Source: Rebecca billardiae RCC1528 (lineage: Eukaryota; Protista; Haptophyta). From it: a DNA stretch of 64,000 bases. Every line of letters starts with the position of its first letter. Position 1 is the stretch's first letter. Made by a program: the position numbers and the translations under genes. Below are positions 3,035 through 52,965 of the stretch, piece after piece. The notes under the pieces were generated by a model, which ran no database searches, was not told the DNA's origin, and saw only the letters and a program-made list of their open reading frames with translations. The stretch lies in assembly GCA_965240325.2 (NCBI GenBank), contig OZ251253.1, forward strand, positions 310,001 through 374,000. The letters run 5' to 3'.

Positions 3035-3162
3035 ATTATTAATTTTTATAGTATATTCTATATATTATATAATTATATAATATATATATATATATATAAT
3101 TATATATATATACCGTCAGTCGTCGTCACGGAACGATATGACGACGATATATTTTAATATAT
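3035..3162. repeat. (AT)n-rich island between convergent genes (also 6592-6693, 12081-12133, 15116-15191, 29048-29105, 55865-55930)
   Basis: Near-pure A/T runs in an otherwise very GC-rich background. Confidence 0.85.
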
Positions 3163-4736: not shown

Positions 4737-4884
4737 GACGAGCGACCCCGGCGCGGCTAACGCCCCGCCCCGCCCGTCGCCGGCCGCCGCGCCGCCGGGA
4801 ACGAGCCGGAAAACCGGATCTCCGCAGGAAGAATGAAAGCAAAAGGGAGGACGGGCGTGATCAAGAACCCGCGTGGCCGCGACG

Positions 4885-7086: not shown

Positions 7087-7743
7087 TCACCGCCCGCGCG
7101 CGCGCTCCTCGCGCTCGCGCCGCCGCTTCGCCGCGCGCGAGCGCGTGAGCATCAGGTCGACGATGTACAGGCCACCCGACACGAGCGCGACCGCCGCGCA
7201 CGCGACGAGGAAGGTGCGCTCGTGCGAGTCGGCGACGTGCGGCTCGGGCGGGACCTGCGAGCGGCCGGAGCGTGCGAAGCCCGACTGCGCGAAGCGGACG
7301 AGCTTCTCCACCGAGAAGGACGGCTGCTGGAAGTAGTACATGACGCCGTGTCTGAAGAACAGGACCGACGGCACGTGCTGCAGCCCAAAACGCTTCGCGA
7401 GCCACGGGGACTCGTCGACGTCGACCATCGCGACGTTGACGGCGATCGTGCCCTTCTCCTCGGCGTCCTCAAGCAGCGCGGTCGCCACCTTTGGCATCGA
7501 GCGCTTCAGCCGCTTGCACTCGTAGTCGACCGCGTTGCAGAAGGAAACAAGCCACGGGCCGGTCGTCGCGCCGGTCGCCGCCTGCGTGAGGCGCTCGAAG
7601 TTGCTCTCGTCGAGGTAGTGCACCTTGGCCTCGGGCACGTCGAGCATGTCGTCGTACACCGCCGGCTCGGCGCCGCCGCGTCCGACCGACGCCATGAGCA
7701 GCGCGAGCGCGGCGCACGCGCGCATGCCTCCTCGCTTCGGCAT
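7087..7743 (-). CDS. Membrane-anchored thioredoxin-domain (TMX/PDI-like) protein with non-canonical active site
   Basis: Signal peptide; LDESNFERLTQAATGATTGPWLVSF...CKRL...AMVDVDESPWLAKRFGLQHVPSVLFF thioredoxin fold; C-terminal TM helix and basic tail. Confidence 0.8.
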   Translation of the reverse strand: MPKRGGMRACAALALLMASVGRGGAEPAVYDDMLDVPEAKVHYLDESNFERLTQAATGATTGPWLVSFCNAVDYECKRLKRSMPKVATALLEDAEEKGTIAVNVAMVDVDESPWLAKRFGLQHVPSVLFFRHGVMYYFQQPSFSVEKLVRFAQSGFARSGRSQVPPEPHVADSHERTFLVACAAVALVSGGLYIVDLMLTRSRAAKRRREREERARGR

Positions 7744-7874
7744 GATGGCGGCCGAGTGCGCACTCGCGACCGCCAAAAAAAACGCCGGACCGCGTGGCCG
7801 CTTTCAATCCGGGGCGACCGGGACGAAACCCGGCTGGGCAATTGAAAGCTACGCGCGCCAAATCGCCGCGGGCG

Positions 7875-32692: not shown

Positions 32693-35646
32693 CTACCCCC
32701 AGAGCACGCTCTGCGTCTTGGCCATCTCGCTCTTGACCCGCGCCACGTACTCCGCCTCCGCGCGCTCGATCGCCTGGCGCTCCAACACCTTTGAGTTCGC
32801 CTCGAGCTGCTTCGAAAAGTGCTTGTGCTGCATCTGCGTCTTGAGGTAGGCGGAGTGCTCGAGCTGCCGCTTCTGCTCGTTCTCGCGCTTGATCTGCTCG
32901 AGCTTGTTCACGCGCTCCACCTGGCGGGGCGGGAAGGTAGGGTTGGGGGGTAGGGTTGGGGGGTAGGGTTGGGGGGTAGGGTTGGGGGCGGCAGGCGTGT
33001 GAGTGAGGCCACGCCGCACGTGCGCGCGCGCGTGGCGGCGCCCGCCCGCGCGCTGCGCGCTCACACGTGCGCGCGCGCGGGCGCCAGAGCGCGAGGGAGC
33101 GCGCGCTCCCGGGGCGGCGGCGCGCGTGCGCGCACCTCCCGTTGGATCACGTCCAGCTCCGCGAGGTGGTGCGCGCGCGCGGCCGCGCGGTCCCGCTGCC
33201 TGTCCTCGATTTGCTTCTGCCGCCCTTCCAGCGTCACCTGCAGCAGCTGCTCGCGCGCCGCCTGCTCGCGGCCCCACTCCGCGACGCGCTTGTCCCACGC
33301 CTTGCCTGGCGGCGGGTGAGGGTGAGGGTGAGGGTGAGGGAAGCACGGCGCGCACACACAGAGACAGAGAGAGCACGGCGCACACACACAACGGGGGTTA
33401 GGGTTAGGGTGAGGGTGAGGGTGAGAGGGTTAGGGTGAGGGTGAGGGTGAGAGAAGCACGGCGTGCACACAGCCGCGGGGCCGCTGCATGCGCGCGGCCC
33501 GCCCGCCCGGCCGGGCGGGCAGCTGGGTGCCGCCCAGCCGCGCGCCCGCTCGCCCGGCTGGGAGCCGCCCAGCCGCGCCCGTGCGCGCGCCGCGCCCAGC
33601 CCCCAGCCTTGCGCCCGCGCGCGCGCGCGCCCGGCTCGCGCTCGCACCGAGGTCGGCCTCGCGCGCCTTCTCGAGCTCCGCCTCGTCCGCTGCCTCCTTC
33701 GCCATCAGCAGCTGCAGGTGGCGCTGGTAGGCGAGCGACTCCTGCTTGAGCCGCTCGTGGTGCGCGCGCTCGAGCCGCTCGTCCTCCGCCTCCTTCGACA
33801 AGACGGAGTCCAGCCGGGCTGCGCGGCGGCGCCAGCGGGCCAGGGCGGGGACGGGCGGGGCGGGCGGGCGGCGGGCCGGAGCGGGCGCGGGCGGGCGGGC
33901 GGGGGCGGGCGGGCGGGCGGTGGGGTTGGGTGTTTGGTGTTGGGTTAGGGTACGGGCAGATGTCAGTGTCGCCGTCGGGCGAGGGCGCGGCGCCAGCATG
34001 GTCGCCACCCCGCCCGCGCCGCCCTACTGCCCCCGCGCGCCGCGCGCCGCGCGCCGCGCGCCGCGCGCCGCGCGCCGCACCCTTATCCTCCTCGAGCTCC
34101 TTGGCGTACGCGCGCGCGCGGTCCGAGCGCTTCGCGACGTTGAACGAGTCCAGCTCGAGCTTCGCCGCGTACTGCGCCTTCCGCCGCTCCACCTCCGCCA
34201 CCTCCTGCGCGTCCTTTTCCGCCTGCCACTGCTGCGCCATCAGCTCGGCGGCGCGCTCGCGCTCGGCCGCGTCCGCGTCGCGCAGGGCCTGTTTCTCCGC
34301 GGTCTGGGCGGGTGGCGGTGTGCGCGCGCGGAGGGAGGCGGGGGAGCACGCGTGAGGCGGGGCGGGGCGCGCTCGGCGCCGACGGCTGACGCCGCCGCCG
34401 CCGCCGACACGCGCTGCACGCACGCGCCCACACGGGCGTCCGCACGCGCGGCACGCGGCCGGACCAGCGGCCGGCCGCGCCCGCGCACCCGCCCGCTCGA
34501 TCGCACCGCACCGCACGCCGCCACCCACGCGCGCGCCGGTGGCAGCACGGCTGCGCCACCGCCCCCCGGACTCCGACAGCCCGTCCACCGCCCTCCGGAC
34601 TCCCACAGCCCCACCGCGCCCCCCTGTGACGCGCCGCGCGCTCGCGCCTAGGCCTGTGGCACACCCGGGCCAGTGACACCCCCTCTCTCCCTGCCTGGTG
34701 GCTGCCGCCGGTGCCCGCCCGCCCGCCCGGGGCCACGCCCGCACGCCTGGCCGCCCCGCACACGCCCCCGGGCCCCCGCCTCCCTCGCGCACTTCTCCTC
34801 CTCCCGGACGAGCTCCTCCCACGCTCCTCCCGGATTCCTCCTCCTCCCGGACTCCGCGCGCACCTGTCTGGCGAGGATGCGCATCTGCTCCTCGTCCATC
34901 GCCCTGCGCTGCGCCTCCTCCTCCGCCTCGCGCCGCTCCTTCGCCTCGGCGTCCTTGACCCACATGTCGGCGAAGACCTTCTCCTCCTGCTGCTCCAGCT
35001 CGAGTAGCGCCATCCGCTCCTCGATCTGGTACCCGCGCGCCGCGTCGCACGCCTTGGCGATGTTGGCCGAGTCGGCGTTGCGCAGCGGGTCGCACGACAG
35101 CCGCCATTGCCGGTCGAGCTGCTCCTGCACGTACGTGCGGCGCGTCTCCTCGCGCTTGTTGCGCAGCTCGCGCGCGCGCGACTCCATCCGCTCGCGCCGC
35201 GCCTCCGGGCCCTCGCCCAGCGCCTCGATCTGCCGCTCGAACGCCTCGTCCTCCGCGCGGAGCATCTCGGACAGCTTCCGGCGGCGCTCGATCAGCAGCT
35301 GCTTGTCGGCCGCGCGGATGGAGTCGAAGCGCTGCTGCACGGCGCGGCGGCGGATCACGCCGTCGGTGCGCTGCTCCCACTGCGCGTACGCGCCGCGCTT
35401 GAAGTCCTCCTTCACCGCCTCCGACATCTTGAGCCGCTCGCTCTCCTGCTTGCGCTTCTGCAGCACGATGAAATCCGAGCGGATTCCGCCATGGCCAACC
35501 TGCGCGCCGGGCGGCGGGGCGCGGGGGATGGCGGGGGCGAACGGTGGCGGTGAGGCCCGGGCGGCCTGCGGGCCGCGGCCTCGCGCCGGGCGGGCGGCCA
35601 GGCGCGCGCGGCGACGGGCGGCGAGTGCCGGCGAGCCGCCCACCAT
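32693..35646 (-). CDS. CFAP53: Cilia- and flagella-associated protein 53-like (CCDC11, TPH coiled coil), 6 exons
   Basis: Exons 35646-35644 (ATG only), 35499-34864, 34303-34081, 33818-33648, 33305-33136, 32920-32693, all GT-AG and frame-consistent; ERRRKLSEML..E, RARELRNKREETRR..VQEQLDRQWRLSCDPLR motifs. Confidence 0.8.
32936..33452 (+). repeat. Intronic telomere-like / G-rich repeats (GGGTGA, GGGTTA, GGGGGGTAGGGTT)
   Basis: 32936-32988 four GGTAGGGTTGGGG units; 33314-33340 and 33393-33452 (GGGTGA/GGGTTA)n. Confidence 0.85.
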
Positions 35647-35803
35647 CCTGGCCACAGCTTCGAACGCCCCAATAACCGAACTTTTCGTCCGGACTGCGCA
35701 CCGGCTTCCACCGGACCAAGCCGGGCGGCTGGCGAGGCCGACCTCCACGACGGGCGCGATCGCGGTCGCCGCGCTCTCCTCGCGCCCGGGGGCTCAGCAC
35801 GCC

Positions 35804-38488
35804 ATGAAGCGCACCGGAGAGAGCGACGGCCGCACGCCCGTGTACAATCTGATGCGGATGTTGACGGGCTTCATGCGATCAGCTTCGGCTCCGTCGGCGC
35901 AGCGCGAGCTCGACCTCGGCGGCTCCAGCGCCGACGCTCGCGCTGACGATGCCACCGAGTTGCCGGCGCCGAGCCCGCCCGAGGCGGATGGCGCGAACAA
36001 GAGGGCCAGGCACTCGATGGTGCTCGACTCACGTGACACCGGGCCCGATGGGTCCACTCCATCCCACGTGGATGGCGCGTTGCCCGTCGCGCAGGCTGCT
36101 GCTGCCCTGCGCTGCGACCAGGAGGAGGACGGCGATGACGATGACGCGGAGACGGTGGTCGGAGGCGGGGATGAGCGCGAGGAGCCCGCCGGCATGGGCG
36201 ATGCTTCGCCTTCTGTGTTCCTTGGCGTGCACTACGAGGCAGAGATGGGGCGGTGGCGTGCAAGCGTATGCCACAACGGCAGCCAATACTACGCGCCCGG
36301 AGGCCTGGCAACTGCCGCCGAGGCGGCGCGCGCGTATGACGCGCTCGTGCGCAAGAAGCGCCTCGTGGGCGTGAAGCGGCTCAACTTCCCTTCACCACAC
36401 GAGTACGAGCTCGAGCTGCAGGCCAGCCGCGCCGCGCAGGCCTCGAGCCACGGCTTTGTGGGGATTACCTGCAATTCCAGCCGCCAGACGGGTCCACGAC
36501 CATGGCAGGGAGTTGTCTGTCACAATGGGAAACAGCTTTATGCCGGCAGCCATGCCACGGCGGAGGAGGCCGCGCACGCGTACGATGCACTCGTGCGCAA
36601 GAAGGGCCTGGTGGGCACCAAGCGGCTCAACTTCCCCACGGCTGACGAGCACGACCTCAACGAGCGCTGCACGGTGAACCACAACAGGTGCACCATCACG
36701 GCCGTGCACAGACCAGCAGCAGCGGAGCCCGCCATCGAGCAGCCGCCGCCTTTACGCCGCCCCTCTGCACGCGTGGCTGAGCAGGGGCCCGCTGCTGCTG
36801 CCGGTGCTGCATTGCCATCTGCCTTGCACCAGCAGCTCGCCACGCCGCCCTCCATCGAGCACCCTGCGCCCGCCAGCGCTGGCCTCAGCTCGGCCGCAGG
36901 TGCACACGCAGAGGCGGCTGCTTCTGCGCCTGCGGACACGCTGGCCGGCACACCCGGCGAGAGCGGTGCTGAGCCGCCGCCGCGCCTCGCGACGCTCGAG
37001 GCCAGCGTCGAGCGCCCGTGTGAGCACGTGGGTCACACCGGGCCGCCCGCTCGCAGCGGCGAGACTCCAGATGGGGCCTCGCCCTGCGGCCACGAGGAGG
37101 AGGACGGCGATGACGATGACGCGGAGACGGTGGTCGGAGATGGGGATGAGCGCGAGCAGCCCGCCGGCATGGACGACGTGTCGCCTTCCGACTTCGTTGG
37201 CGTGTGCTACGCTGCAAAGAGGGGGCGATGGGGTGCACAAGTGGTGCACAAGGGCGTCAAACACCACGCGCCCGGACGCCTGGCGACTGCCGCCGAGGCG
37301 GCGCGTGCGTACGACGCGCTCGTGCGTGAGAAGGGCCTCGTCGGCGTGAAGCGTCTCAACTTCCCGTCCTCGCACGAGCGCGAGCTCGAGCTGCAGGCCA
37401 GCCACGCCGCACATGCCTCGAGCCACGGCTTTGTGGGAGTTTCCTGTAGCTCAGGGTCTGGCACTCCACGACCGTGGCAGGGATTTGCCCGTCACAACGG
37501 GAAGCGACTTTGCACCGGCAGATATGCCACAGCGGAGGAGGCCGCGCGCGCGTTCGACGCGCTCGTGCGTGAGCTTCACCTGGTGGGCATCAGGCGGCTC
37601 AACTTCCCCACGCCGGACGAGCGCGACCTCAACGAGCGCTGCCCGGTGCGATCCAACAGGTGCACTATCACGGCCGTGCACAGACCAGCAGCAGCGGAGC
37701 CCGCCTCCGAGCAGCCGCCGCCTTCACGCCGCCCTTCTGCACTCGCGGCTGAGCAGGGCCCGGCCGCTGCCGTCGACGCCACACAGCCAGCTGCCTTGCA
37801 CCAGCAGCAGCCCGCCATGCCGCCCTCCGCCGAGCACCCGTCGCCCTCCAGCGCTGGCGTCGGCTCGGCAGCAGCTGCGCGCGCGGAGGCGGCTGCTTCT
37901 GCGCCCGCTGACACGGCGGCCGGCACAGCCGGTGAGAGCGGTGCTGAGCCGCCGCCGCTCCTCGCGACGCTCCAGACCAGCGCCGAGCACCCTTACCCAC
38001 ATGCCGCTCACATCGTGCCGCCCGCTCACAGCGGTGAGACCCCCGAGGCTGCTGCTGCGGTGCAGATGATCGTCGAGCTGAAGATGCAGCTGCACACGCG
38101 CACGTGTTTAGTCAAGCGGCTGCAGGCCGAGCTGCGCGGCGTGCGCGCGCGGCTGCAGGCGGCCGAGCACGTGGCGGAGCACGTGGCGGACCCTGCGCGC
38201 GTGCGCGTGCTGCGGCAGGTGCTGAGGGCCGAGGTGGCGGGCGCTGGCTCCAGGTGCGCTGGAGCTCGCCCATGCCGCGCCGCCCACGCATGCGCGCGCG
38301 GTGCGACTGTTGCGCCAGCCAGCAGCCCCGCACGCCCCACCAGCTCTCTCACTTGGTACTGACCCAGTCCACACCCCACCTCCCCTGACTGCCGGCGCAG
38401 CACTGACGCCGACGGGTCGGCATCGCGTGCGCAGGCGCAGCTCGAGTACACGCGCACGCTCGAGAGCCAGCTGCTGCGTCACGGATGA
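35804..38488 (+). CDS. AP2-domain array copy 1 (four AP2 domains + C-terminal coiled coil)
   Basis: Four F.GV...W.A...ATAxEAARAYD...RLNFP domains; intron 38254-38400 gives terminal exon STDADGSASRAQAQLEYTRTLESQLLRHG*. Confidence 0.88.
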
Positions 38489-39167
38489 GGCTCACTCACT
38501 CAGTCACAGCGTTGCTATATATACGTTATGCGCAGCAGTTTACAAAGCTCATATATTAGCGCGTCGGAAACTCGTCGCAGCTTCTGAGTCAGTAGTTGAT
38601 GTCCGGCGGACTCGGACGGACTCAGGGACTGCGAAGCTGAGGGCGAGGCGCATGCGCGGGCCCCGCCCCCGGGGCCGGGGCCGCGGTGCGGCCGGATGCC
38701 GGTGAGGTGGGCCGCCTGTCACCTGCTGCCGATGCTTTCACTTTCAGGAGACTCCCCGCGGTCCCAGTGGCCACGGGGGCTGACGGGGCGAGCCGCGTGA
38801 CTGTAAGGCTGCGGCAACATCGCGGATCTGACCGCCTGCGCGCGGTGCGCAGTATTAGCATCATCACAACGAGCTGAGACAATCATCTTATTATTATTGC
38901 TGTGCATCAGATCGGCGGCATGGTCTGAACAACCGTTGCTACTTTTGACGATGAACCCAGCAAGGTTGGATACGGCGAGGCGCAAGGGTCGCAAGGCTGC
39001 CCACCCATACGCTGCCGAGGTCAAGGTGCGCCCGGTGGTGAGTGACGCCATCAATGACCGGCATTGCAGACAATGAGCGGTGCGATTTGCTCTTGATGAA
39101 TCCCGGATCGCGGTTCAGTGCTTTCCGGATCGGCGGGACGTTCGCCGCGCTCTCCTCTCAGCACGCC

Positions 39168-40911
39168 ATGCAGCGCGCCGCAGAAAGCGACAGCCGCGCG
39201 CCCCCGTCCAGTCTGATGCGGATGGCGACGGCTGGGGCTCCTTCGGCGCCGCGCGAGCTCGACCCTGGCGGCTCCAACGCTGACGGTGCCGCGGACTTGC
39301 CGGCGCCAACCGTGCCCGAGGCTGCTGGTGCGAACAAGAAGGCCAGGCACTCGATGGAACTCGAGTCGCGTGGCGGCCGGACCAAAGGGGCCAGCGCGGT
39401 GCACGCGCTGCTCGCCGCGCAAGCTGCCCAGTGGGTGGCGTCTGGCACGACCGACGCACGGCCGCGTGATGGGGCCTCGCCCTGCAACCGTCAGACGGAC
39501 GGAGATGGCGATGCCGTGGAGACGGTGCTTGGAGGCGGGGATGAGCGCGCGCAGCCCGCCGGCATGGACGAAGTGTCGCGTTCGGACTTCTTGGGCGTGT
39601 ACTATAATGCAGCTGCGGGGTGGTGGTCTGCAATAGCCACTCACAAGCGCTGCAGATACCGCGCACCTGGACGCCAGGCGACTGCCGCCGAGGCTGCGCG
39701 CGCGTACGACGCGCTCGTGCGCAAGAAGGGCCTCGTTGGCGTGAAGCGTCTCAACTTCCCGTCCCCGCACGAGTACGAGCTCGAGCTGCAGGCCAGCCGC
39801 GCTGCGCAGGCCAGCCGTGCTGCGCAGGCCTCGAGCCACGGCTTTGTGGGGATTCGCTGTGATTCCAGCAGCAAGGCCGGTCCACGAACATGGCGAGGAT
39901 TTGTCTGTCACAACGGGGAGCAACTTTTCACCGGCACATATGCCACGGCGGAGGAGGCCGCGCACGCGAACGATGCACTCGTGCGCAAGAAGGGCCTGGT
40001 GGGCACCAAGCGGCTCAACTTCCCCACTCCGGACGAGCGCGACCTCAACGAGCGCTGCGTGACACGCAAATACACGAGCGTGGCCGCGCAGAGGCCAGCA
40101 GCAGCGGAGCCCGCCATCGAGCAGCCGCCGCCTTCACGCCGCCCCTCTGCACGCGCGGTGGAGCAAGGCCCAGCCGCTGCTGTCGATGCGGTGCAGCCAG
40201 CGCCCAAGCACGCGCAGCTCGCCATGCCGCCCCCCAGCGAGCACCAGGTGCCGGCCAGTGCTGGCCTCAGCTCGGCCGCAGGTGCACACGCGGAGGCGGC
40301 TGATTCTGCGCCTGCGGACACGCTGGCCGGCACAGCCGGCGAGAGCGGTGCTGAGCCGCCGCCGCTCCTCGCGACGCTCGTGACGAGCGTCGAGCACCCT
40401 TGCCCGCACGACGCTGTCAGCTGGCCGCCTGCTCGCAGCGGCGAGACTCCCGAGGCTGCCGCTGCGGTGGAGATGATCGTCGAGCTGAAGATGCAGCTGC
40501 ATGCGCGCGAGTGTTTAGTCGAGCGGCTGCAGGCCGAGCTGCGCGGCGTGCGCGCGCGGCTGCAGGCGACCGAGCGCGTGGTGGAGCACGTGGCGGACCC
40601 TGCGCGTGTGCGCGTGCTACGCCAGGTACTGAGCGCCGAGGTGGCGGGCGCTGGCTGCAGGTGCGCTGCAGCTCGCCCCATGCCGCGCCGCCCCACGCAT
40701 GCGCGCGCCGTGCGATTGTTGCACCAGCCAGCAGCCCAGCGTATTACACCAAGCTCCTCTCTCACTCTGTACAGTGTACTGACCCAGTCCACACCCCACC
40801 TCCCCTGGCTGCCGGTGCAGCAGCACCAACGTCGACGGGCTTGCATCTCGTGCGCACGCACAGCTCGAGTACACGCGCTCGCTCGAGAGCCAACTTCTGC
40901 GTCACGGATGA
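39168..40911 (+). CDS. AP2-domain array copy 2 (two AP2 domains + coiled coil)
   Basis: Same CAGCACGCC-ATG start context, two AP2 domains, intron from 40661 to 40820/40823, terminal LRHG*. Confidence 0.85.
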
Positions 40912-41327
40912 GTCTCGGTCAAGCGGCGGCACCCAGTCGGCCGACCACGTGTCATCGGAAGAGGCGGGCGACTAAGCTGCTTCGCATCGGCCCGGATGCG
41001 CGTCCGGGAGGCTCGCCAGACGAGGAGTCGCCGCTATTGATCAGCGCGCTGTGGTCTGACGTACTGCTATTTGTAGCCGTGGCGACGTAGCCAGCAAGGT
41101 ATTGGACGGTGGGGCGCAAGGCGGTTCGCGCGAGCGAGGCCACTGCACACACGTCAGTCATTGCTGTCCCGGTCGAGATTGCTCTATGGGGGTACCGGAT
41201 TCCCGGTGTACAGTGGCACCTGTATTCATGGCTTCATGCAAATCCGGAATTCCGAGACGGGCGCCTCCGGACACATTCATGGGCGCTGGCGCGCTGCGCT
41301 CGCCTCACGCCCGAGGCTCAGCACGCC

Positions 41328-43046
41328 ATGAAGCGCGCCGGAGAGAGTGGCAGCCACCCGCCCACGTCCAGTTGGGTGCGGGCGGTTACACCCCCGGCTT
41401 CGTTGGCACCGCGCGAGCTCGACCCCGGCGGCTCCAACGCTGACGGTGCCGCGGACTTGCCGGCGCCGAGCGTGCCCGAGGCTGAAGGCGCGAACAAGAG
41501 GGCCAGGCACTCGATGGGGCTCGAGTCGCGTGGCGGCCGGACCAAAGGGGCCAGCGCAGTGCACGCGCTGCTCGCCGTGCAAGCTGCCCAGCGGGTGGCG
41601 TCTGGCTCGACCGACGCACGGCCGCGTGATGGGGCCTCGCCCTGCAACCGTCAGACGGACGGAGATGGCGATGCCGTGGAGACGGTGCTTGGAGGCGGGG
41701 ATGAGTGCGGGCAGCCCGCCGGCATGGACGATGCGTCGCGTTCGGACTTCTTGGGCGTGTACTACCATGCAGCTGCGGGGCGGTGGTCTGCAATAGCCAC
41801 TCACAAGCGCCGCAGATACTGCGCACCTGGACGCCAGGCGACTGCCGCCGAGGCGGCGCGCGCGTACGACGCGCTCGTGCGCGAGAATGGCCTCGTCGGC
41901 GTGAAGCGTCTCAACTTCCCGTCCCCGCACGAGCGCGAGCTCGAGCTGCAGGCCAGCCGCGCTGCGCAGGCCTCGAGCCACGGCTTTGTGGGGATTCGCT
42001 GTAATTCCAGCAGCCACGCGGGTGCACGGCCGTGGAAAGGACTTGTCTGTCACAACGGGAGGCAGCTTCATGCCGGCAGCCATGCCACGGCGGAGGAGGC
42101 CGCGCACGCGTACGATGCACTCGTGCGCGAGTACCTCCTGGTGGGGACCAAGCGGCTCAACTTCCCCACGCCGGACGAGCGCGACCTCAACGAGCGCTGC
42201 GTGACACGCAAATACACGAGCGTGGCCGCGCACAGACCAGCAGCAGCGGAGCCCACCATCGAGCAGCCGCCGCCTTCACGCCGCCCCTCTGCACGCGCGG
42301 CGGAGCAAGGCCCAGCCGCTGCCGCTGTTGCAGTGCAGCCAGCGCCCAAGCACGCGCAGCTTGCCACGCCGCCCTCCACCGAGCACCCTGCGCCCTCCAG
42401 CGCTGGCCTCGGCTCGGCAGCAGGTGCGCGTGAGGAGGCGGGTGCGCCGCCTGTTCTCGCGGACACGCTGGCCGTCACAGCCGGTGAGAGCGGTGTTGAG
42501 CCGCCGCCGCTCCTCGCGACGCTCGTGACGAGCGTCGAGCACCCTTGCCCACACGTCGCTCCCAACGGGCCGCCCGCTCGCAGCGGCGAGACTCCCGAGG
42601 CTGCCGCTGCGGTTGAGACGATCGTCGAGCTGAAGATGCAGCTGCATGCGCGCAAGAGTTTAGTCGAGCGGCTGCAGGCCGAGCTGCGCGGCGTGCGCGC
42701 ACGGCTGCAGGCGGCCGAGCACGTGGCGGAGCACGTGGCTGACCCTGTGCGCGTGCGCGTGCTGCGGCAGGTGCTGAGCGCCGAGGCGGCGGGCGCTGGC
42801 TCCAGGTGCGCCGCAGCTCGCCCAGGCCGCGCCGCCCCACGCATGCGCGCGCGGTGCAACTGTTGCGCCAGCCAGCAGCCCAGCACGCTGCACAGCCTCT
42901 CTCACGTGGTCCTGACCCAGTCCGCACCCCACCCGTCCCCTGACTGCCGGCGCAGCAGCACTGACGCCGACGGGCCAGCATCGCGCGCACATGCGCAGCT
43001 CGTGTACACGCGCACGCTCGAGCACCAGCTTCTGCGTCACGGATGA
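41328..43046 (+). CDS. AP2-domain array copy 3
   Basis: Two AP2 domains + MQLHARKSLVERLQAELRGVRARLQ coiled coil; homologous intron is in frame and stop-free. Confidence 0.85.
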   Translation: MKRAGESGSHPPTSSWVRAVTPPASLAPRELDPGGSNADGAADLPAPSVPEAEGANKRARHSMGLESRGGRTKGASAVHALLAVQAAQRVASGSTDARPRDGASPCNRQTDGDGDAVETVLGGGDECGQPAGMDDASRSDFLGVYYHAAAGRWSAIATHKRRRYCAPGRQATAAEAARAYDALVRENGLVGVKRLNFPSPHERELELQASRAAQASSHGFVGIRCNSSSHAGARPWKGLVCHNGRQLHAGSHATAEEAAHAYDALVREYLLVGTKRLNFPTPDERDLNERCVTRKYTSVAAHRPAAAEPTIEQPPPSRRPSARAAEQGPAAAAVAVQPAPKHAQLATPPSTEHPAPSSAGLGSAAGAREEAGAPPVLADTLAVTAGESGVEPPPLLATLVTSVEHPCPHVAPNGPPARSGETPEAAAAVETIVELKMQLHARKSLVERLQAELRGVRARLQAAEHVAEHVADPVRVRVLRQVLSAEAAGAGSRCAAARPGRAAPRMRARCNCCASQQPSTLHSLSHVVLTQSAPHPSPDCRRSSTDADGPASRAHAQLVYTRTLEHQLLRHG

Positions 43047-43492
43047 GTCTTATCGAAGCTTAGCGGAAAAGTAGCTGCTGCGCATGCCGGCCCCGCCGTG
43101 ATTCCGGGAGGCTCGTCTGGCGAGGAGTCACTGCTGCTATATAGTATATTGATCCGTGGCGTCGGGTCTGGCGTACTGTACTACTGACACTATTGGTCAC
43201 GACCGCCTTGACGATGCCGAATATAGCGATGCGCTGTACGCCAGCAAGATGGTTCAGTCGCCAGGCCGACCTCGGGGCTGGCGGCTACCTGCGTCACTGC
43301 CAACAGTGCGACACTGGTGTTGCCTCATCAAAGCCGGATACAGCGCCCGACAGCGGTTCCGGAATCCTCCATTCTGGTTTGAGTGGTTTCTGGGTCAGTG
43401 CGTCCGGATTTCCGGGCGAACCGAAACCCGCACGGCCGCTGCGGTGGGACGGTCGGCGCGTCGCGGTCGCTGCGTTCTCCTCTCAGCACGCC

Positions 43493-45205
43493 ATGAAGCG
43501 CGCCGGAGAGAGCGACAGCCGCGCGCCCGCGTCCGGTCTGATGCGGATAGTGACGTTTCCGGCTCAGTTGGCGCCGCGCGAGCTCGACCCCAGCGGCTCC
43601 AACGCTGACGGTGCCGCGGACTTGCCGGCGCCAACCGTGCCCGAGGCTGCTGGCGCGAACAAGAGGGCCAGGCACTCAACGGTGCTCGAGTCGCGTGGCG
43701 GCCGGACCAAAGGGGCCAGCGCAGTGCATGCGCTGCTCGCCGCACGAGTTGCCCAGCGGATGGCGTCTGGCTCGACCGACGCCCGGCCGCCAGATGGGGC
43801 CTCGCAGACGGACGGAGATGGCGATGCCGTGGAGACGGTGGTTGGAGGTGGGGCTGGGCGCGGGCAGCCCGCCGGCATGGGCGATGCATCGCCGTCTGCG
43901 TTCAATGGCGTGTACTACGATGTAACGAATGGGCGGTGGCGTGCACGCGTAGCTCACAAGGGCGTCCGATACGCCGCGCCCGGATTTATTGCGACTGCCG
44001 CCGAGGCGGCACACGCGTACGACGCGCTCGTGCGCGAGAACGGCCTCGTCGGCGTGAAGCGTCTCAACTTCCCGTCCTCACACGAGCGCGAGCTCGAGCT
44101 GCGGGCCAGCCGCGCTGCGCAGGCCTCGAGCCACGGCTTTGTGGGGATTCGCTGTAATTCCAGCAGCCACGCGGGTGCACGGCCGTGGAAAGGACTTGTC
44201 TGTCACAACGGGAGGCAGCTTCATGCCGGCAGCCATGCCACGGCGGAGGAGGCCGCGCACGCGTACGATGCACTCGTGCGCAAGAAGGGCCTGGTGGGCA
44301 CCAAGCGGCTCAACTTTCCCACTCCGGACGAGCGCGACCTCAACGAGTGCTGCGTGACACGCAAATACACGAGCGTGGCCGCGCAGAGGCCAGCAGCAGC
44401 GGAGCCCTTCATCGAGCAGCCGCCGCCTTCACGCCGCCCCTCTGCACGCGCGGCGGAGCAAGGCCCAGCCGCTGCTGTCGATGCGGTGCAGCCAGCGCCC
44501 AAGCACGCACAGCTCGCCATGCCGCCCCCCCGCGAGCACCAGTTGCCGGCAAGTGCCGGCCTCAGCTCGGCAGCAGGTGCGCGTGCGGAGGCGGCTGCTT
44601 CTGCGCCTGCGGACACGCTGGCCGGCACACCCGGCGAGAGCGGTGCTGAGCTGCCGCCGCTCCTCGCGACGCTCGTGGCCAGCGTCGAGCACCCTTGCCC
44701 GCACGACGCTGTCAGCTGGCCGCCTGCTCGCAGCGGCGAGACTCCCGAAGCTGCCGCTGCTGTGGAGATGATCGTCGAGCTGAAGATGCAGCTGCATGCG
44801 CGCACGTGTTTAGTCAAGCGGCTGCAGGCCGAGCTGCGCGGCGTGCACGCGCGGCTGCAGGCGGCCGAGCGCGTGGCGGAGCACGTGACGGACCCTGCGC
44901 GCGTGCGCGTGCTGCGGCAGGTGCTGAGCGCCGAGGTGGCGGGCGCTGGCTCCAGGTGCGCTGCAGCTCGCCCAGGCCGCGCCGCCCCACGCATGCGCGC
45001 GCCGTGTGACTGTTGCGCAAGCCTGCAGCCCAGCGTATTACACCAAGCTCCTCTCTCACTCTGTACAGTGTACTGACCCAGTCCACACCCCACCTCCCCT
45101 GGCTGCCGGTGCAGCAGCACCAACGTCGACGGGCCTGCATCTCGTGCGCACGCACAGCTCGAGTACACGCGCTCGCTCGAGAGCCAACTTCTGCGTCACG
45201 GATGA
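43493..45205 (+). CDS. AP2-domain array copy 4
   Basis: Two AP2 domains + coiled coil + homologous intron and terminal exon. Confidence 0.85.
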
Positions 45206-45621
45206 GTCTCGGTCAAGCGGCGGCACCCAGTCGGCCGACCACGTGTCATCGGAAGAGGCGGGCGACTAAGCTGCTTCGCATCGGCCCGGATGCGCGTCCG
45301 GGAGGCTCGCCAGACGAGGAGTCGCCGCTATTGATCAGCGCGCTGTGGTCTGACGTACTGCTATTTGTAGCCGTGGCGACGTAGCCAGCAAGGTATTGGA
45401 CGGTGGGGCGCAAGGCGGTTCGCGCGAGCGAGGCCACTGCACACACGTCAGTCATTGCTGTCCCGGTCGAGATTGCTCTATGGGGGTACCGGATTCCCGG
45501 TGTACAGTGGCACCTGTATTCATGGCTTCATGCAAATCCGGAATTCCGAGACGGGCGCCTCCGGACACATTCATGGGCGCTGGCGCGCTGCGCTCGCCTC
45601 ACGCCCGAGGCTCAGCACGCC

Positions 45622-47342
45622 ATGAAGCGCGCCGGAGAGAGTGGCAGCCACCCGCCCACGTCCAGTTGGGTGCGGGCGGTTACACCCCCGGCTTCGTTGG
45701 CACCGCGCGAGCTCGACCCCGGCGGCTCCAACGCTGACGGTGCCGCGGACTTGCCGGCGCCGAGCGTGCCCGAGGCTGAAGGCGCGAACAAGAGGGCCAG
45801 GCACTCGATGGGGCTCGAGTCGCGTGGCGGCCGGACCAAAGGGGCCAGCGCAGTGCACGCGCTGCTCGCCGTGCAAGCTGCCCAGCGGGTGGCGTCTGGC
45901 TCGACCGACGCTCGGCCGCGTGATGGGGCCTTGCCCTGCGACCGTCAGACGGACGGAGATGGCGATGCCGTGGAGACGGTGCTTGGAGGCGGGGCTGAGC
46001 GCGAGCAGCCCGCCGGCATGGACGATTCATCACCTTCTGAGTTCATGGGCGTGCACTACGATGTAAAGGCGGCGCGGTGGTATGCAAAAGTACAGCACAA
46101 GGGCGACATCTTCTACGCGCCCGGAGGCCGGGCAACTGCCGCCGAGGCGGCACACGCGTACGACGCGCTCGTGCGCGAGAACGGCCTCGTCGGCGTGAAG
46201 CGGCTCAACTTCCCGTCCTCGCACGAGCGCGAGCTCGAGCTGCAGGCCGGTCGCGCCGCACAGGCCTCGAGCCACGGCTTTGTGGGGATTTCCTGTAATT
46301 CCAGCAGCCAGGCGGGTCCACGACCATGGCAGGGACTTGTCTGTCACAAGGGGAAGCGTGTACGTACCGGCGGCTACGCCACGGCGGAGGAGGCCGCGCG
46401 CGCGTACGACGCGGTCGTGCGTGAGCATTGCCTGGTGGGCATCAAGCGGCTCAACTTCCCCACGGCGGACGAGCGCGACCTCAACGAGCGCTGCCAGGTG
46501 CGATCCAACAGGTGCACCATCACGGCCGCGCACAGACCAGCAGCAGCGGAGCCCGCCTCCGAGCAGCCGCCGCCTTCACGCCGCCCTTCTGCACGCGCGG
46601 TGGAGCAAGGCCCAACCACTGCTGCGGTTGCGGTGCAGCCAGCTCCTGCGCACGCGCAGCTCGCCACGCCGCCCTCCACCGAGCACCCGGCGCCGGCCAG
46701 CGCTGGGCTCAGCTCGGCAGCAGGTGCGCGTGCGCAGGCGGGTGCACCGCCTGTGCCCGCGGACACGCTGGCCGACACACCCGGTGAGAGCGGTGCTGAG
46801 CCGCCGCCGCTCCTCGCAACGCTTGTGACCAGCGCCGAGCACCCTTGCCCACACGACTGCCACGCCGTGCTGCCCGCTCGCAGCAGCGAGACTCCCGAGG
46901 CTGCTGCTGCTGTGGAGGCGATCGTCGAGCTGAAGATGCAGCTGCATGCGTGCACGTGTTTAGTCGAGCGGCTGCAGGCCGAGCTGCGCGGCGTGCGCGC
47001 GCGGCTGCAGGCGACCGAGCGCGTGGCGGAGCACGTGGCGGACCCTGCGCGCGTGCGCGTGCTACGCCAGGTGCTGAGCGCCGAGGTGGCGGGCGCTGGC
47101 TCCAGGTGCGCTGCAGCTCGCCTATGCCGCGCCGCCCACGCATGCGCGCGCCGTGTGACTGTTGCGCCAGCGATCAGCCCAGCACGCTCCACCAGCTCTC
47201 TCTCACTTGGTGCTGAGCCAGTCCACACCCCACCCCCCCTGACTGCCTGCGCAGCAGAACCGACGCTGACGAACCGGCATCATGTGCTCAGGAGCAGCTC
47301 GAGTACACGCGCACGCTCGAGAGCCAGCTGCTGCGCGGATGA
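45622..47342 (+). CDS. AP2-domain array copy 5
   Basis: Two AP2 domains + coiled coil; terminal exon ...LEYTRTLESQLLRG* ends at 47342. Confidence 0.85.
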
Positions 47343-47579
47343 GCCATGAGGAATCAGCGAAGCTCATCAGCAAAGAAGCTAATGGCAATGCCGTGCTTCC
47401 GGGACGAGGCTCGGGCGAGGAGTCACTGACTACACTGCGGTTGATCAGCGGAGCTGTCTGAAGTACCTGCTGCCTTCTGTAGCAGACTCTTCTGTAGCCT
47501 TGATGGCGAGGAGGCTGCCGCCAGCAAGTGAATGAGCAGTAGGTTCGGAAAGTGCCAGGTGGAGGCTGCGGTGATGTGC

Positions 47580-48159
47580 GGAGCGTTGCGCCAGCTGGAC
47601 AAACGCGAAGGACCCAAGACCCAGGATCCTTGGACTTGTGGAGGGCCCCGGCGAGACCTGCACTCGGATCGGGGCCCTCTCCCGCTGTGCCGCTTGCGGC
47701 GCACGCCTGACCGGTGCGGCGGGCGACGTGTGCGCACGCCGTGCAGCTCGCGGCGCGTGCGCGTTGGCTAGATGGCACACGTCTCCCGACGCACACGTCG
47801 AATGACCGCAGCTGGGATGCCCTTTCGCGCCGCAAGGACGCTTGCGAGTCCGGTCGCGCGGCCGAGCGGCGTGGCCGTGCCGCCTGCACGCAGTGCGCCC
47901 ATGGACTTGGCTTCGCCGCGCGCGCTGAGGCTGGCGAGCGTCACGGCCGAATTCTACGACGCGTGCGACGCGCCATCTGCCTGCTTCCTTGCCTCCGACG
48001 CACGTTTTCTGCGGGCAGCGGCGACTCGCCCGCCCATGCCTGTGCGGCGGCGAGCCGCCATCCACCGCGCTTCGCCCTAAACAGAGCGCGGAACATTTCG
48101 TTTTGAAAAGCGCAGATCTGAAAAGGCCGAGGGCGTTTGTCCAGCTGGCGCAACGCCCC
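47580..48159. mobile_element. MITE-like non-autonomous TIR element (~580 bp) in the spacer between AP2 copies 5 and 6
   Basis: Perfect 24-bp inverted repeat GCGTTGCGCCAGCTGGACAAACGC at 47583-47606 and 48133-48156; its size accounts for the longer copy 5-6 period. Confidence 0.75.
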
Positions 48160-48332
48160 TGATGCCCGTTGCTCATCTCGGTTCGGTGCTGCTGCTGTCC
48201 GGATTCGGGATTTCCGCCAATAAATAATGCGGCCACAACCGGACGCAATCCGCATGGGCGCTTGAAGCGGACTGGGGCGGTCGGCGCGATCTCGGTCGCC
48301 GCCTTTCTCCTCGCGCCCGCCCTCAGCACGCC

Positions 48333-50071
48333 ACGAAGCGCACCGGAGAGGGTGACTACCGCGCGCCTGCGTCCAGTCAGATGTTGGCTTCGACTTCGGC
48401 TCCGTCGGCGCCGCGTGAGCTTGACCCCGGCGGCTCCAACGCTGCCGATGCCGCCGACTTGCCGCCGACAACTGTGCCCGAGGCTGCTGGCGCGAACAAG
48501 AAGGCCAGGCACTCGATGGTGCTCGAGGCACGTGGTTGCTGGCACACAGGTGCCAGCGCAGTCCACGCGCTGCTCGCCGCACAAGCTTCTCAGCCGGTTG
48601 CTGATGCTGAGACGACCGACGCACGGCCGCCAGACGGGGCCTCGCCCTGCAAGCAGGAGGAGGAGGACCGCGAGGAGTCGGAGGACGAGAACGCGGAGAC
48701 GGTGGTTGGAGGCTGGGCTGGAAGCGGGCAGCTCGCCGGCATGGGCACCGTGTCGCGTTCCGATTGTTTTGGCGTGCACTATCAGGCAAGGATGGGGCGA
48801 TGGTATGCACACGTAAGTCACAAGGGTGGGCGATACTCCGCGCCCAGAGGCCTGGCGACTGCCGCTGAGGCGGCACGCGCGTACGACACGCTCGTGCGCG
48901 AGAACGGCCTCGTCGGCGTGAAGCGTCTCAACTTCCCGTCTTCGCACGAGCGCGAGCTCGAGCTGCAGGCCGGTCGCGCCGCGCAGGCCTCGAGCCACGG
49001 CTTTGTGGGGATTTCCTGTAATTCTGGCCGCCAGGCGGTTTCACGACCATGGCGAGGAGTTGTCTGTCACAAGAGAAAGCAGCTTTACACCGGCACATAT
49101 GCCACGGCGGAGGAGGCCGCGCACGCGTACGATGCGCTTGTGCGGAAGAAGCGCCTCGTGGGCACCAAGCGGCTCAACTTCCCCACGCCGGACGAGCTCG
49201 ACCTCAACGAGCGCTGCGTGACACACAAGTACACGAGCGTGGCCGCGCAGAGACCAGCGGCAGCGGAGCCCGCCATCGAGCAGCCGCCGCCTTCACGCCG
49301 CCCCTCTGCACGCGCGGCGGAGCAAGGCCCAGCCGCTGCCGCTGTTGCGGTGCAGCCAGCTCGTGCGCACGCGCAGCTCGCCACGCCGCCCTCCATTGAG
49401 CACCCTGCGCGTGCCAGCGCTGGCCTCAGCTCGGCCGCAGGTGCGCGTGCGCAGGCGGCTACACCGCCTATGCCCGCGGACACGCTGGCCGTCACTGCCG
49501 GCGAGAGCGGCGTGGGACCGCCGCCGCTCCTCGCGACGCTCGTGACGAGCGCCGAGCACCCTTGCCCATCCGACGCCCACACAGCGCCGCCAGCTTGCAC
49601 GGAGGAGACTGCCTAGCTAGGCTGCCGCTGCGGTGGAGATGATCGTCGAGCTGAAGATGCAGCTGCATGCGCGCACGAGTTTAGTCGAGCGGCTGCAGGC
49701 CGAGCTGCGCGGCGTGCGCGCGCGGCCGCAGGCGGCCGAGCGCGTGGCGGAGCACGTGGCGGACCCTGCGCGCGTGCGCGTGCTGCGGCAGGTGCTGAGT
49801 GCTGAGATGGCGGGCGCTGGCTCCAGGTGTGCTGCAGCTCGCCCCATGCCGCGCCACCACCCAGCATGCATCTGCACTACGCACCAACACCGCGCCAGCC
49901 AGTGCGCTGCACCCGTGTCGCCTCGGTTTGGCACTGACCCAGCCCACACCCCACCTCCCCTGACTGCCGGCGCAGCAGCACTGACGCTGACGGGCCAGCA
50001 TTGCGTGCGCAAGGCGCAGCTCGAGTGCGGCGCCGCGCGCTCACGAGAGCCACCTGCTCAGCGGACGATGA
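48333..50071 (+). pseudogene. AP2-domain array copy 6, disrupted or truncated
   Basis: Start ATG changed to ACG at 48333 (next in-frame ATG 48381); 4-bp CTAG-type insertion near 49613 gives a stop at 49616 and a frameshift before the coiled coil; both AP2 domains intact. Confidence 0.8.
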
Positions 50072-50897: not shown

Positions 50898-52927
50898 TAG
50901 GCTGTCCGACTCTACACTGCTGTGTAGAGGCTGCCGAAAGTCTGCTCTAGCGGGACCCCCGCGCACTGGGGTCGTTCCGGGCGCGAGCTCGGCGGGGACG
51001 TGGCGAGCGGGTCGGCGCGCGCCGTGGGCTGGGTGTGCGATTTTACCAACGTATCGGTCGACCTGACCCTCCCCGTCGCGCCGCTCTTGCCCTCGTGGCC
51101 TCTCTTCCCCCCAACACGGGTGCGCGCAGCCGCTTGAACAGCCTGGCTGCAGGTCGTTCACAGACGGCAGGCCGCGTGCAACCTGCGCGGGTGAAGAGGG
51201 GTGGCTTGTTGCGTGGTTACGCGGCTGACGCCCGTGTGTGGCCTTGCGAGCCTTTGTGTGCGAGGTTACTTGCCCACATCTGCTCTCGCGTGTCATGCGC
51301 GCGTGCAACGAACACTATGCCGTATGCGACCCGCCTTGCAGCAGCCGAGGCCACTGCCACTGGCTATCCACGTCGCGCGCGAGATCGTCGACATTCTGAC
51401 GGGCTCGCATCCAGGCGAGTGCAAGTGCGCGCGCTGCGTTACGTTCCTCCCGTCCACTGGAGGTGTGCACTGTGAAGCGGAGTCCAGCAGCCAAAACGAC
51501 ATGGGCATCTGACTCGTCATTCGTGTCAACCTGTGACGACGGGCATCGCGCCAGGCTGAGAGGCCAGTGCCCAGGATAGCTCGGGTGATGGGGCACCGCA
51601 CGTCTGATCATCGGATGGCAGATGAAGTCAGCAACGTACTAGATCAAGCGTCGGCTTGTCCACGTCGCCGGCGCGGTGTGCGCACTCTCCTGCTGCCGCT
51701 GCTGCACTACAGCGCTACTGTACTCTGACAATTCTAGGATTTAAAGACACATCAGGTATGAGGACGCAGCTCTCCTGATTCGTCTGTCGAAGTACTGATT
51801 GGAGGCGGAGGATGTGAGCGCGTTAGCCGCGGATGAGGGAGTCGTCGCCGATGCTGATCACTGAGATGCCGCGCGCTGTGACTTGCAGTCGTCGGTCGTC
51901 ACGCCGTTGCCGCCGTCGGACGGTCGGTCCCGGCTGACGAGTGACGGTCCGAGTTGATGCAGTAAGCTAGTGAGAGTAGTCTGCGTGGATGCTCACGCCA
52001 GCCGCCGGTGCGGTCGGGGATGGCGCTCAGCCTAGCCGTGGGGGAGGTAGTCGGCCTGGCCGGCGGGCGGGGTTGCTCAATATTCGTTTCTTTTAATATT
52101 TTATTCATCGCCGTGGATTTAATTTTAAACCCGGCCACGCTAACGACATGACCTTGTGGCGCGTTGCGTCGGAGAACGGGACGGCAGCCTGCCCGCTCGG
52201 AGCGTGCTTGTACGCCACAAGCATGCGGGCGACGATGCTTGATGATTCCCACTCTCGCACCGGAGCTGTGAGTCTGTGTAACACAGTGACGCGGGAGCCG
52301 AGGGTGACTCGACGGGCAACTTCAGGAATGCACCTGCCAGAAGCACTGCCTTCAATATCAAGCACGCAGATGGCAAAGACGAAGGCCACAAGCATGCGAC
52401 AGAACATGTCAACGATATGGCGTCACCGTCTTAGTGCCTGCAGTGGCCCCACGCTGGCCCAGCTGGCAGCAGGTGGACAAGCGCAAGCGCAGCGGAGATC
52501 CGATGGTGTACGTTACACGCGCGCATGACACGCGAGAGCGGATGTGGGCAAGTAATCTCGCACACAAAGGCTCGCAAGGCCACATATGAGCGTCAGCCAC
52601 GCAACCACGCAACAAGCCACCCCTCTTCACCCGCGCAGGTTGCACGCGGCCCGCCGTCTGTGAACGACCTGCAGCCAGGCTGTTCAAGCGGCTGCGCGCA
52701 CCCGTGTTGGGGGGAAGAGAGGCCGCGAGGGCAAGAGCGGCGCGACGGGGAGGGTCAGATCGACCGATACGTTGGTAAAATCGCGCACCCAGCCCGCGGC
52801 GCGCACCGACCCGCTCGCCACGTCCCCGCCGAGCTCGCGCCCAGTGCAGCCCCAGTGCGCGGGGGTCCCGCTAGAGCAGACTTTCGGCAGGCCCCCCGTA
52901 GCCAGCGGAGGGGGGCCGGACAGGCTA
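50898..52927. mobile_element. Non-autonomous Mutator-like element (MULE), ~420-bp TIRs, 9-bp TSD
   Basis: TSD GTTCATCAC at 50889-50897 and 52928-52936; termini TAGGCTGTCCG / CGGACAGGCTA; long inverted homology 50931-51318 vs 52503-52890; no transposase ORF. Confidence 0.9.
51724..52050 (-). repeat. Dispersed repeat family copy nested inside the MULE
   Basis: Reverse complement aligns by eye with 58400-58738 (GTGATCAGCATCGG..CGACGACTCCCTCA.CCGCGG..AACGCGCTC..ACATCCTCC...CAGTACTTCGACAGACGAATCAGGAGAGCTGCG). Confidence 0.8.
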
Positions 52928-52965
52928 GTTCATCACGCTTTCGGACGTCGGTGGTGCATGCAGCA

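Follow-up and report, generated by a model that had tools for sequence, protein, structure and literature searches.

Positive selection on base-reading residues is a hallmark of a few animal zinc-finger systems (i.e., the KRAB-ZNFs and PRDM9), which have informed our understanding of genome defence and of the control of recombination. Outside plants, AP2 is the main DNA-binding family to have expanded in protists, where it is represented by the ApiAP2 proteins of Apicomplexa and by the 157-member AP2/ERF family of Emiliania huxleyi, which makes up 33% of the predicted transcription factors (TFs) of this organism (PMC4827209). The ApiAP2 proteins have diverse measured motifs (PMC2965767), and the contact residues vary between the paralogues of the protist expansions, as do the measured motifs in Plasmodium (PMC2965767, PMC6631176, PMC4827209). 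We analysed a stretch of 64,000 nucleotides of the haptophyte Rebecca billardiae RCC1528 (contig OZ251253.1, positions 310,001 to 374,000 of the forward strand; hereafter the window), in which 35.8–49.6 kb is occupied by a tandem array of seven units, all in head-to-tail orientation on the + strand. Each unit encodes two AP2 domains, termed AP2-A and AP2-B, and translation of the + strand gave exactly seven of each. While these protist AP2 families are old and dispersed, this array is young, tandem and homogenised by conversion, and its ratio of nonsynonymous to synonymous rates (omega) is well above 1 only at the reading face. The full-text literature that was searched yielded no description of an AP2 array homogenised by conversion, or of AP2 contact residues under positive selection at the codon level. 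We propose, with a probability of roughly 0.7, that the array consists of TF-like tandem paralogues that are homogenised by gene conversion and whose DNA-facing AP2-A residues have been diversified by positive selection, so that the paralogues would differ in the DNA that they read.

A profile made from the array alignment and searched against the PDB with HMMER found WRI1 (E = 7e-7), ERF96, ERF1 and TEM1. In the AlphaFold2 model of the double domain of unit 4, which was built from a 45-sequence alignment and had a mean predicted local distance difference test (pLDDT) score of 77, both domains had the order beta-beta-beta-alpha, with a three-stranded antiparallel sheet packed against one helix (strands 10–13, 18–25 and 28–31 and helix 39–52 in AP2-A). 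The best Foldseek matches of this model were the WRI1-DNA complex (7WQ5), the AP2 domain of TEM1 (7ET4/7ET5) and the AtERF1-DNA complex (1GCC), with probabilities of 0.97–1.0. The scaffold residues (i.e., G-V, the Trp of strand 2, the A-x-A-Y-D helix and L-N-F-P) were invariant in all seven AP2-A domains. The seven AP2-B domains share them too, with two exceptions: the Tyr of AYD is replaced by F in unit 2 and by N in unit 3, and six copies have I in place of the Val of G-V. The array domains have the same predicted fold and scaffold motifs as the plant AP2/ERF proteins (WRI1, 7WQ5; TEM1, 7ET4; ERF96/ERF100, 5WX9; 1GCC). Like WRI1, the array proteins carry two AP2 domains per protein, and strand 2 of TEM1 (GRWGAQIYE) is close to that of unit 2 (GRWGAQVVH).

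The array domains are, however, only 23–29% identical to the solved plant AP2 domains, and in AP2-A strand 3 is followed by one inserted residue (Pro, column 53 of our alignment). The linker between the two AP2 domains, which is ~20–26 residues long (SPHERELELQASRAAQASSHG), bears no similarity to the conserved linker of ~25–30 residues in the plant AP2 subfamily (AP2/ANT/WRI1), and in HMMER comparisons with plant double-AP2 proteins only the AP2 cores, not the linker, were aligned. The two-domain arrangement does not superpose on that of WRI1 (template modelling (TM) score 0.32, root-mean-square deviation about 14 Å), and the best matches of the array are protist multi-AP2 proteins instead of plant AP2-subfamily proteins. 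Among 1.8 billion representative proteins, the array profile matched 2,094 AP2-type proteins, the best of them at only 167 bits; these matches are distant, and neither the array's own proteins nor close kin of them were found in this search. A database homology search with the whole protein of g4 (i.e., the gene that encodes unit 4) found no homologous protein, and its AP2 region alone gave one match with 36% identity. In metagenome contigs, relatives of the array were found only at 25–42% identity, and in prokaryotic genome contigs none were found. An association of the AP2 domains with a transposon or homing endonuclease was also considered, and Pfam detected no transposase, integrase or nuclease domain in the open reading frames (ORFs) of the array.

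In the plant subfamilies the contact residues are strongly conserved; in the array they are the part that evolves fastest. Strand 2 of AP2-A reads WRASVCH, WGAQVVH, WSAIATH, WSAIATH, WRARVAH, WYAKVQH and WYAHVSH in units 1–7, respectively, and strand 3 reads QYY, KHH, RYR, RYC, RYA, IFY and RYS. These strings and their alternating codons had been pointed out in an initial annotation, and all of them were exact upon translation and in a codon table. The alternating columns 40, 42 and 44 of strand 2 hold four, six and six residue types among the seven domains (codons cgt/ggt/tct/tat; agc/caa/ata/cgc/aaa/cac; tgc/gtg/act/gct/cag/agt). Of the codons between them, TGG, GCA and CAC are shared by every unit, as had been stated, but the fourth (V/A, column 43) varies. 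The silent-site identity of the three shared codons, to which the annotation had also drawn attention, is uninformative in itself, because 18 of the 30 invariant degenerate AP2-A codons are likewise identical at silent sites. The buried partners V30, Y32, W39, A41, V/A43, H45, Y50 and A52 are conserved, and a basic residue is kept ahead of the conserved Trp. Targeted mutagenesis of the kind caused by diversity-generating retroelements (DGRs) was considered and rejected on a reading of the hypervariable codons, which have no obvious adenine bias.

By the method of Nei and Gojobori (NG86), omega was 1.19 in the AP2-A sheet, 0.18 in the AP2-A helix, 0.30 in the linker, 0.63 in the AP2-B sheet and 0.62 in the tail. 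The value for the helix agrees with the earlier statement that the part from the helix to LNFP is nearly invariant. Site tests were carried out with our own codon-model likelihood program (Goldman-Yang (GY) type; F3x4; models M0, M1a and M2a; all branch lengths optimised). For 71 AP2-A codons of the seven sequences on their own maximum-likelihood (ML) tree, the log-likelihood (lnL) was -931.56 under M1a and -911.06 under M2a (2dlnL, i.e., twice the difference, = 41.0), with omega2 = 6.7 at a proportion p2 = 0.185 of the sites. On three wrong topologies 2dlnL for the whole of AP2-A was 52–64, and for the 31 codons of the sheet alone it was 42–49 on four topologies (omega2 about 10 at about 45% of the sites). 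The test gave 36.6 without unit 7, 46.1 without unit 4 and 31.5 with units 3–6 only, and for the tail it gave a marginal 7.5. In a form equivalent to the site models that the initial annotation had proposed, omega > 1 in AP2-A therefore survives changes of topology and removal of copies, and it also survives the multi-nucleotide model and the recombinant null simulations described below.

Where these codons lie was determined from published AP2-DNA complexes. The DNA contacts of ERF100 are R150, R152, W154, E160, R162, R170 and W172 (PMC6631176), those of ERF96 are the equivalents of this list plus R16 (PMC7593309), and those of WRI1 repeat 2 are R169, A172, H174, H175, E181, R183, G185, Y192, Y194 and Y208 (PMC9401623). 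Using HMMER alignments to 7WQ5, 7ET4, 5WX9 and 1GCC, the 45-sequence MAFFT alignment and the modelled hairpin, we mapped the published contacts to columns 28, 31, 33, 34, 35, 40, 42, 44, 49, 51 and 66. In the AlphaFold hairpin there is a two-residue turn between strands 2 and 3, so that column 44 pairs with 49 and column 42 with 51, and all four columns share one face. A gapless HMMER alignment to WRI1, in which columns 50 and 52 would face the DNA, was rejected for the one-residue insertion at Pro53; the latter is favoured by the alignment to TEM1, the 45-sequence MAFFT alignment, the comparison of AP2-A with AP2-B and the register of the AlphaFold hairpin.

Nine AP2-A columns were selected with a posterior > 0.9 (28, 33, 36, 40, 42, 44, 48, 49 and 51). 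They match R147, R152, E160, R162, R170 and W172 of ERF100, and R169, H174, E181, R183, G185, Y192 and Y194 of WRI1. Seven of the nine lie within a ten-position contact set (hypergeometric p = 1.1e-5), and the remaining two, columns 36 and 48, are in the two hairpin turns. More generally, the variable residues of the array sit at the DNA-contact positions E181, R183, H174, Y192 and Y194 of WRI1 and R150, R152, E160, R162, R170 and W172 of ERF100. The contact position sets were fixed beforehand from the solved AP2-DNA complexes. The ten-position set, out of 59 AP2-A positions, holds 48% of the nonsynonymous pairwise differences (permutation p about 1e-5; dN/dS 2.2), and the seven-residue ERF contact list holds 40% of them (p about 1e-5; omega 1.96). 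Hence the earlier expectation that the variable codons fall on the sheet positions that read bases in ERF-type domains agrees with the contacts in WRI1 and ERF96/ERF100, and the selected sites map to the side of the sheet that faces DNA.

From this residue equivalence we infer that the sheet binds double-stranded DNA in a sequence-specific manner. Selection could be real and yet have acted on another ligand of the same surface, such as RNA or a protein partner, which we consider unlikely. Proteins of the AP2 fold from the Toxoplasma mitoribosome are among the weaker Foldseek matches of the model (ranks 7, 10 and 11), which implies that the AP2 fold may occur in RNA-containing complexes. However, three independent solved AP2-DNA complexes have base-contacting residues at the positions equivalent to those selected, the top-ranking structural matches are complexes with DNA (probability 1.0), the scaffold and the basic residue before the Trp are kept, and the array proteins contain an acidic patch and a KRAR motif that resembles a nuclear localisation signal.

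The array is also a mosaic. The trees of its segments are incongruent, units 3 and 4 grouping together in AP2-A, units 4 and 5 in AP2-B, and units 3 and 5 in the tail. A block of 776 bp is exactly identical between units 4 and 6; it spans intergenic DNA and runs ~290 bp into the coding sequence of g4 and g6, stopping some 130 bp short of the AP2-A sheet. This block is a tract of recent gene conversion or duplication. A second exactly identical block, of 178 bp in AP2-B, is shared by units 4 and 5, the AP2-A sheets of which are only about 65% identical. Together with the incongruent trees, the identical blocks imply that homogenisation by gene conversion or unequal exchange is active. Amid this homogenisation the AP2-A reading face stays, or becomes, different: in all pairs of units but 3/4, similarity within the coding sequence is lowest in the AP2-A sheet (61–71% identity in 60-bp windows).

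That the array or its mosaic structure is an artefact of assembling or polishing a repetitive region is hardly credible. An exact identity over 776 bp could come from collapse or polishing, but the differences between units are codon-structured and keep five long reading frames open, and errors would not concentrate at codon positions 1 and 2 of structurally defined residues.

Several points weigh against our proposed explanation. The codon models are our own implementation, not PAML or HyPhy, and recombination was covered by simulation and by alternative trees. The sample consists of seven paralogues from one genome assembly, including that in g7, which is a degenerate-looking copy, and the gene models were predicted from the sequence, their 3' ends, where an intron may follow the C-terminal helix, being the least sure. 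Most copies fall below the Pfam gathering threshold for AP2 (PF00847): g12, which encodes units 1 and 2, scored 56.6 bits against the cut-off of 33.3, whereas the other five ORFs scored 0–30.8 bits, g3 having no match at E <= 0.01. The disordered regions have omega of 0.6–0.8. The site test for AP2-B was not significant (2dlnL = 5.8 with all units and 3.5 without unit 7). When double and triple nucleotide changes are permitted, 2dlnL for AP2-A falls from 41 to 24, a loss of nearly half of the gain in likelihood. Finally, dS is 0.34–0.36 in both sheets and 0.17–0.25 in the flanks. Because the dS of the sheet is raised, part of the contrast between sheet and flank reflects escape from homogenisation, not faster change, and the value of 0.34 fits a partial escape from conversion. 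For the same reason we relied on tests of the sheet alone and on tree-free tests.

The raised dS is what would be expected if there were no positive selection at all, exposed sheet residues being unconstrained (omega about 1) and older divergence being retained where conversion skips the sheet. The exact blocks, the incongruent topologies and the presence of a degenerate copy would also fit such a history, which we nevertheless regard as improbable. The sheet alone, with its own branch lengths, rejects M1a, at the values of 2dlnL and omega2 given above. In 40 neutral replicates simulated on one tree from the M1a fitted to the sheet, 2dlnL reached at most 6.7, compared to an observed 41.9, about half of these replicates being zero, which is how a correctly nested boundary test should behave. 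When three blocks were simulated on randomly chosen incongruent trees and analysed on one tree, the maximum of 36 replicates was 11.2. Moreover, the mean pairwise difference at codon positions 1, 2 and 3, which depends on no tree, was 0.53, 0.51 and 0.29 for the contact codons and 0.084, 0.085 and 0.20 for the other AP2-A codons. Positions 1 and 2 of the contact codons thus differ almost twice as often as position 3, a reversal that neutral drift cannot bring about and that neither relaxed constraint nor recombination can produce.

A mutational artefact was considered as well: omega > 1 could be mimicked by multi-nucleotide mutations that arise in clusters, by hypermutation of the CpG in CGN codons, or by conversion that is patchy and draws on diverged donors. 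The drop of 2dlnL when multi-hit rates are included is in its favour, as is the closest AP2-A pair, in which CG contexts are prominent. The sheets of this pair, units 3 and 4, have four amino-acid differences and one silent difference, and three of the four amino-acid differences are C/T in a CG context (TGG/CGG, TGC/CGC and CGC/TGC), which hints that CpG mutation contributes to recent AP2-A diversification. With multi-hit rates, however, the test is still significant (2dlnL = 24, 2 degrees of freedom, profiled over a grid of rates). Conversion from a donor moves variation and creates no excess of nonsynonymous over synonymous changes. In addition, variable and invariant codons alternate with the two-residue period of a beta-strand and do so at contact positions (p = 1e-5), a placement that a mutational process could not produce. 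We therefore hold an artefact of this kind to be very unlikely.

The AP2-B sheets had been described as varying in the same way, which is correct in position but not in strength. The six equivalent positions, out of 61 in AP2-B, hold 24% of its nonsynonymous differences (permutation p = 0.003), and the enriched variable columns are 116, 129, 131 and 140. Omega at the equivalent positions is 0.77, and there are two to five residue types per contact-equivalent site, compared to four to six in AP2-A. The strong diversifying selection on DNA specificity that the initial annotation had suggested is therefore borne out as omega > 1 in AP2-A but not in AP2-B, and the effect on specificity itself is a prediction from the positions of the selected residues.

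Under the explanation that we favour, i.e., conversion-homogenised paralogues with a positively selected AP2-A reading face, unequal crossing-over and gene conversion maintain the near-identity of the copies along most of each gene. Positive selection has repeatedly replaced the residues that point outward from the three-stranded sheet of AP2-A, and purifying selection acts on the buried residues between the contact columns and on the whole helix. As the most likely consequence, each paralogue would read a different DNA sequence with its AP2-A domain. The more conserved AP2-B may supply a common half-site contact, because the two AP2 sheets of WRI1 occupy adjacent major grooves (PMC9401623), and the C-terminal helix may supply oligomerisation. 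The driver may be subfunctionalisation of a regulatory family or an arms race with mobile or viral DNA. A more far-reaching reading, possible but on balance doubtful, is that the array is an adaptive DNA-recognition repertoire, an AP2-based counterpart of the animal KRAB zinc-finger system, in which selection would continually favour new paralogues whose new AP2-A reading faces recognise changing targets. Transposons, endogenous or infecting viruses and fast-evolving satellite or regulatory DNA would be candidate targets of such a repertoire, and they are put forward just as tentatively.

A likeness to PRDM9 and the KRAB zinc fingers had been drawn from the start. It holds in that omega is > 1 at the contact residues while the scaffold is under purifying selection, but only as an analogy of evolutionary mode. 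What the array has in common with the KRAB-ZNF clusters and PRDM9 is tandem DNA-binding modules, concerted evolution of a scaffold and positive selection on a few base-reading residues. Its fold is AP2 and theirs is C2H2, so that no homology is implied, and its diversity is between genes, whereas theirs is between fingers or alleles. Pfam found only AP2 in the six array ORFs, and no KRAB, SET or other effector domain. The array shows the features of a rapid-recognition array, i.e., tandem organisation together with conversion, and omega > 1 at the contacts, the latter in AP2-A and not in AP2-B.

A variable sheet with a constant helix was also found among the internal repeats of multi-AP2 proteins from a Picozoa-labelled contig, from Cymbomonas and from metagenomes. 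The 1,828-aa gene of Cymbomonas tetramitiformis (LGRX02000939.1; positions 1125–9575 of the locus examined) has 13 uninterrupted AP2 repeats, for which M2a against M1a gave 2dlnL = 15.2 and omega2 = 5.4, a signal weaker than that in the AP2-A domains of the array. The selected sites are the equivalents of columns 44, 48 and 49, plus one in the turn between strands 1 and 2. Given this signal, diversification of the contact face may be widespread among protist AP2 expansions. It should be noted that the Cymbomonas gene also has three copies of a Tudor-like module, and that in the Picozoa-labelled protein and two metagenomic proteins, with 4–13 internal AP2 repeats, the variable residues alternate after the Trp of strand 2.

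The signature known from the animal zinc-finger systems is found here in an unrelated DNA-binding fold and a distant eukaryotic lineage, in a young array in which the remainder of the genes is near-constant. The seven AP2-A domains, with one fixed scaffold and with differences that lie mainly in about nine positions of the reading face, amount to a natural mutagenesis series that is suited to working out an AP2 recognition code. The array also makes testable what drives the large AP2 expansions of Emiliania and other protists, and whether algae run arms races between TFs and their targets.

The seven units are encoded by six long reading frames, which correspond to six genes as judged from the ORFs and their translation (Table 1). 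Each unit has, in order, a basic motif (KRAR/KKAR) with an acidic patch, AP2-A, the linker, AP2-B, a Pro/Ala-rich stretch of ~150 residues and a C-terminal helical segment of ~55 residues (IVELKMQLH...RVRVLRQVL). The unit spacing is 2.14–2.72 kb, apart from the 975 bp between the two units inside g12. In five of the six genes the start ATG is in a conserved context (CAGCACGCC-ATG), the exception being g7. Two complete units are in one frame in g12, which thus has four AP2 domains and one C-terminal helical segment; the C-terminal helix of unit 1 is replaced by the acidic pre-AP2 region of unit 2, the internal period being 975 bp. In g7, ACG is found at the position of the conserved start ATG, and a 4-nt indel and a TAG near 49600–49616 leave the C-terminal helix out of frame. 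Because of this start and of the indel and stop before the helix, g7 is probably degenerate, i.e., a copy that is decaying at the array's edge. The linker of unit 3 contains an in-frame 18-bp tandem duplication (39788–39830, 2.4 copies) that adds QASRAA, which implies that replication slippage also remodels the linker.

Table 1. Positions in the window of the genes, AP2 domains and identical blocks of the array.
Feature	Start	End	Strand	Basis or remarks
g12 (units 1 and 2)	35804	38362	+	ORF, translation; start context CAGCACGCC-ATG; 3' end uncertain
g3 (unit 3)	39168	41090	+	Predicted ORF, translation, start context
g4 (unit 4)	41328	43046	+	Predicted ORF, translation, start context
g5 (unit 5)	43493	45076	+	Predicted ORF, translation, start context
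g6 (unit 6)	45622	47349	+	Predicted ORF, translation, start context
g7 (unit 7)	48228	49616	+	Alignment to unit 6, three-frame translation
AP2-A unit 1	36215	36391	+	Sheet 36215-36307; helix to LNFP 36308-36391
AP2-A unit 2	37190	37366	+	Sheet 37190-37282
AP2-A unit 3	39585	39761	+	Sheet 39585-39677
AP2-A unit 4	41745	41921	+	Sheet 41745-41837; modelled with AlphaFold2
AP2-A unit 5	43898	44074	+	Sheet 43898-43990
AP2-A unit 6	46039	46215	+	Sheet 46039-46131
AP2-A unit 7	48762	48938	+	Sheet 48762-48854
AP2-B unit 1	36455	36637	+	
AP2-B unit 2	37430	37609	+	
AP2-B unit 3	39843	40025	+	
AP2-B unit 4	41985	42167	+	
AP2-B unit 5	44138	44320	+	
AP2-B unit 6	46279	46461	+	
AP2-B unit 7	49002	49184	+	
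776-bp block	40842	41617	+	Exactly identical to 45136-45911 (units 4 and 6)
178-bp block	41951	42128	+	Exactly identical to 44104-44281 (AP2-B, units 4 and 5)

The window, taken to be part of a haptophyte-like nuclear genome, has a G+C content of ~70% throughout, and its other genes, which encode EF-hand, ankyrin/MYND, GT64+GT1 and aldo-keto reductase domains, are eukaryotic. The best named relatives of the aldo-keto reductase exon are from haptophytes (Prymnesium, Haptolina, Tisochrysis and Emiliania; ~55% identity), and the exon has a 99% match in the Logan run ERR14847148. About 2.4 kb upstream of the array, at 32936–33453, there are G-rich minisatellites with telomere-like units (GGTAGGGTTGGGG x4, GGGTGA x9 and a 26-bp AGGGTTAGGGTGAGGG... 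x2), which adjoin long GC-rich simple repeats at 33.0–34.1 kb. Divergent from g12, a 381-codon ORF on the - strand (34651–35793) is rich in Glu, Arg and Lys, resembles a coiled coil and has no Pfam match. The long + strand ORF at 34673–35800, which looks like an upstream extension of g12, is the antisense frame of this ORF, an artefact of the high GC content. Downstream of the array, an intronless ORF of 1,008 codons on the + strand (52435–55458) has GT64 and GT1/GT4 glycosyltransferase domains.

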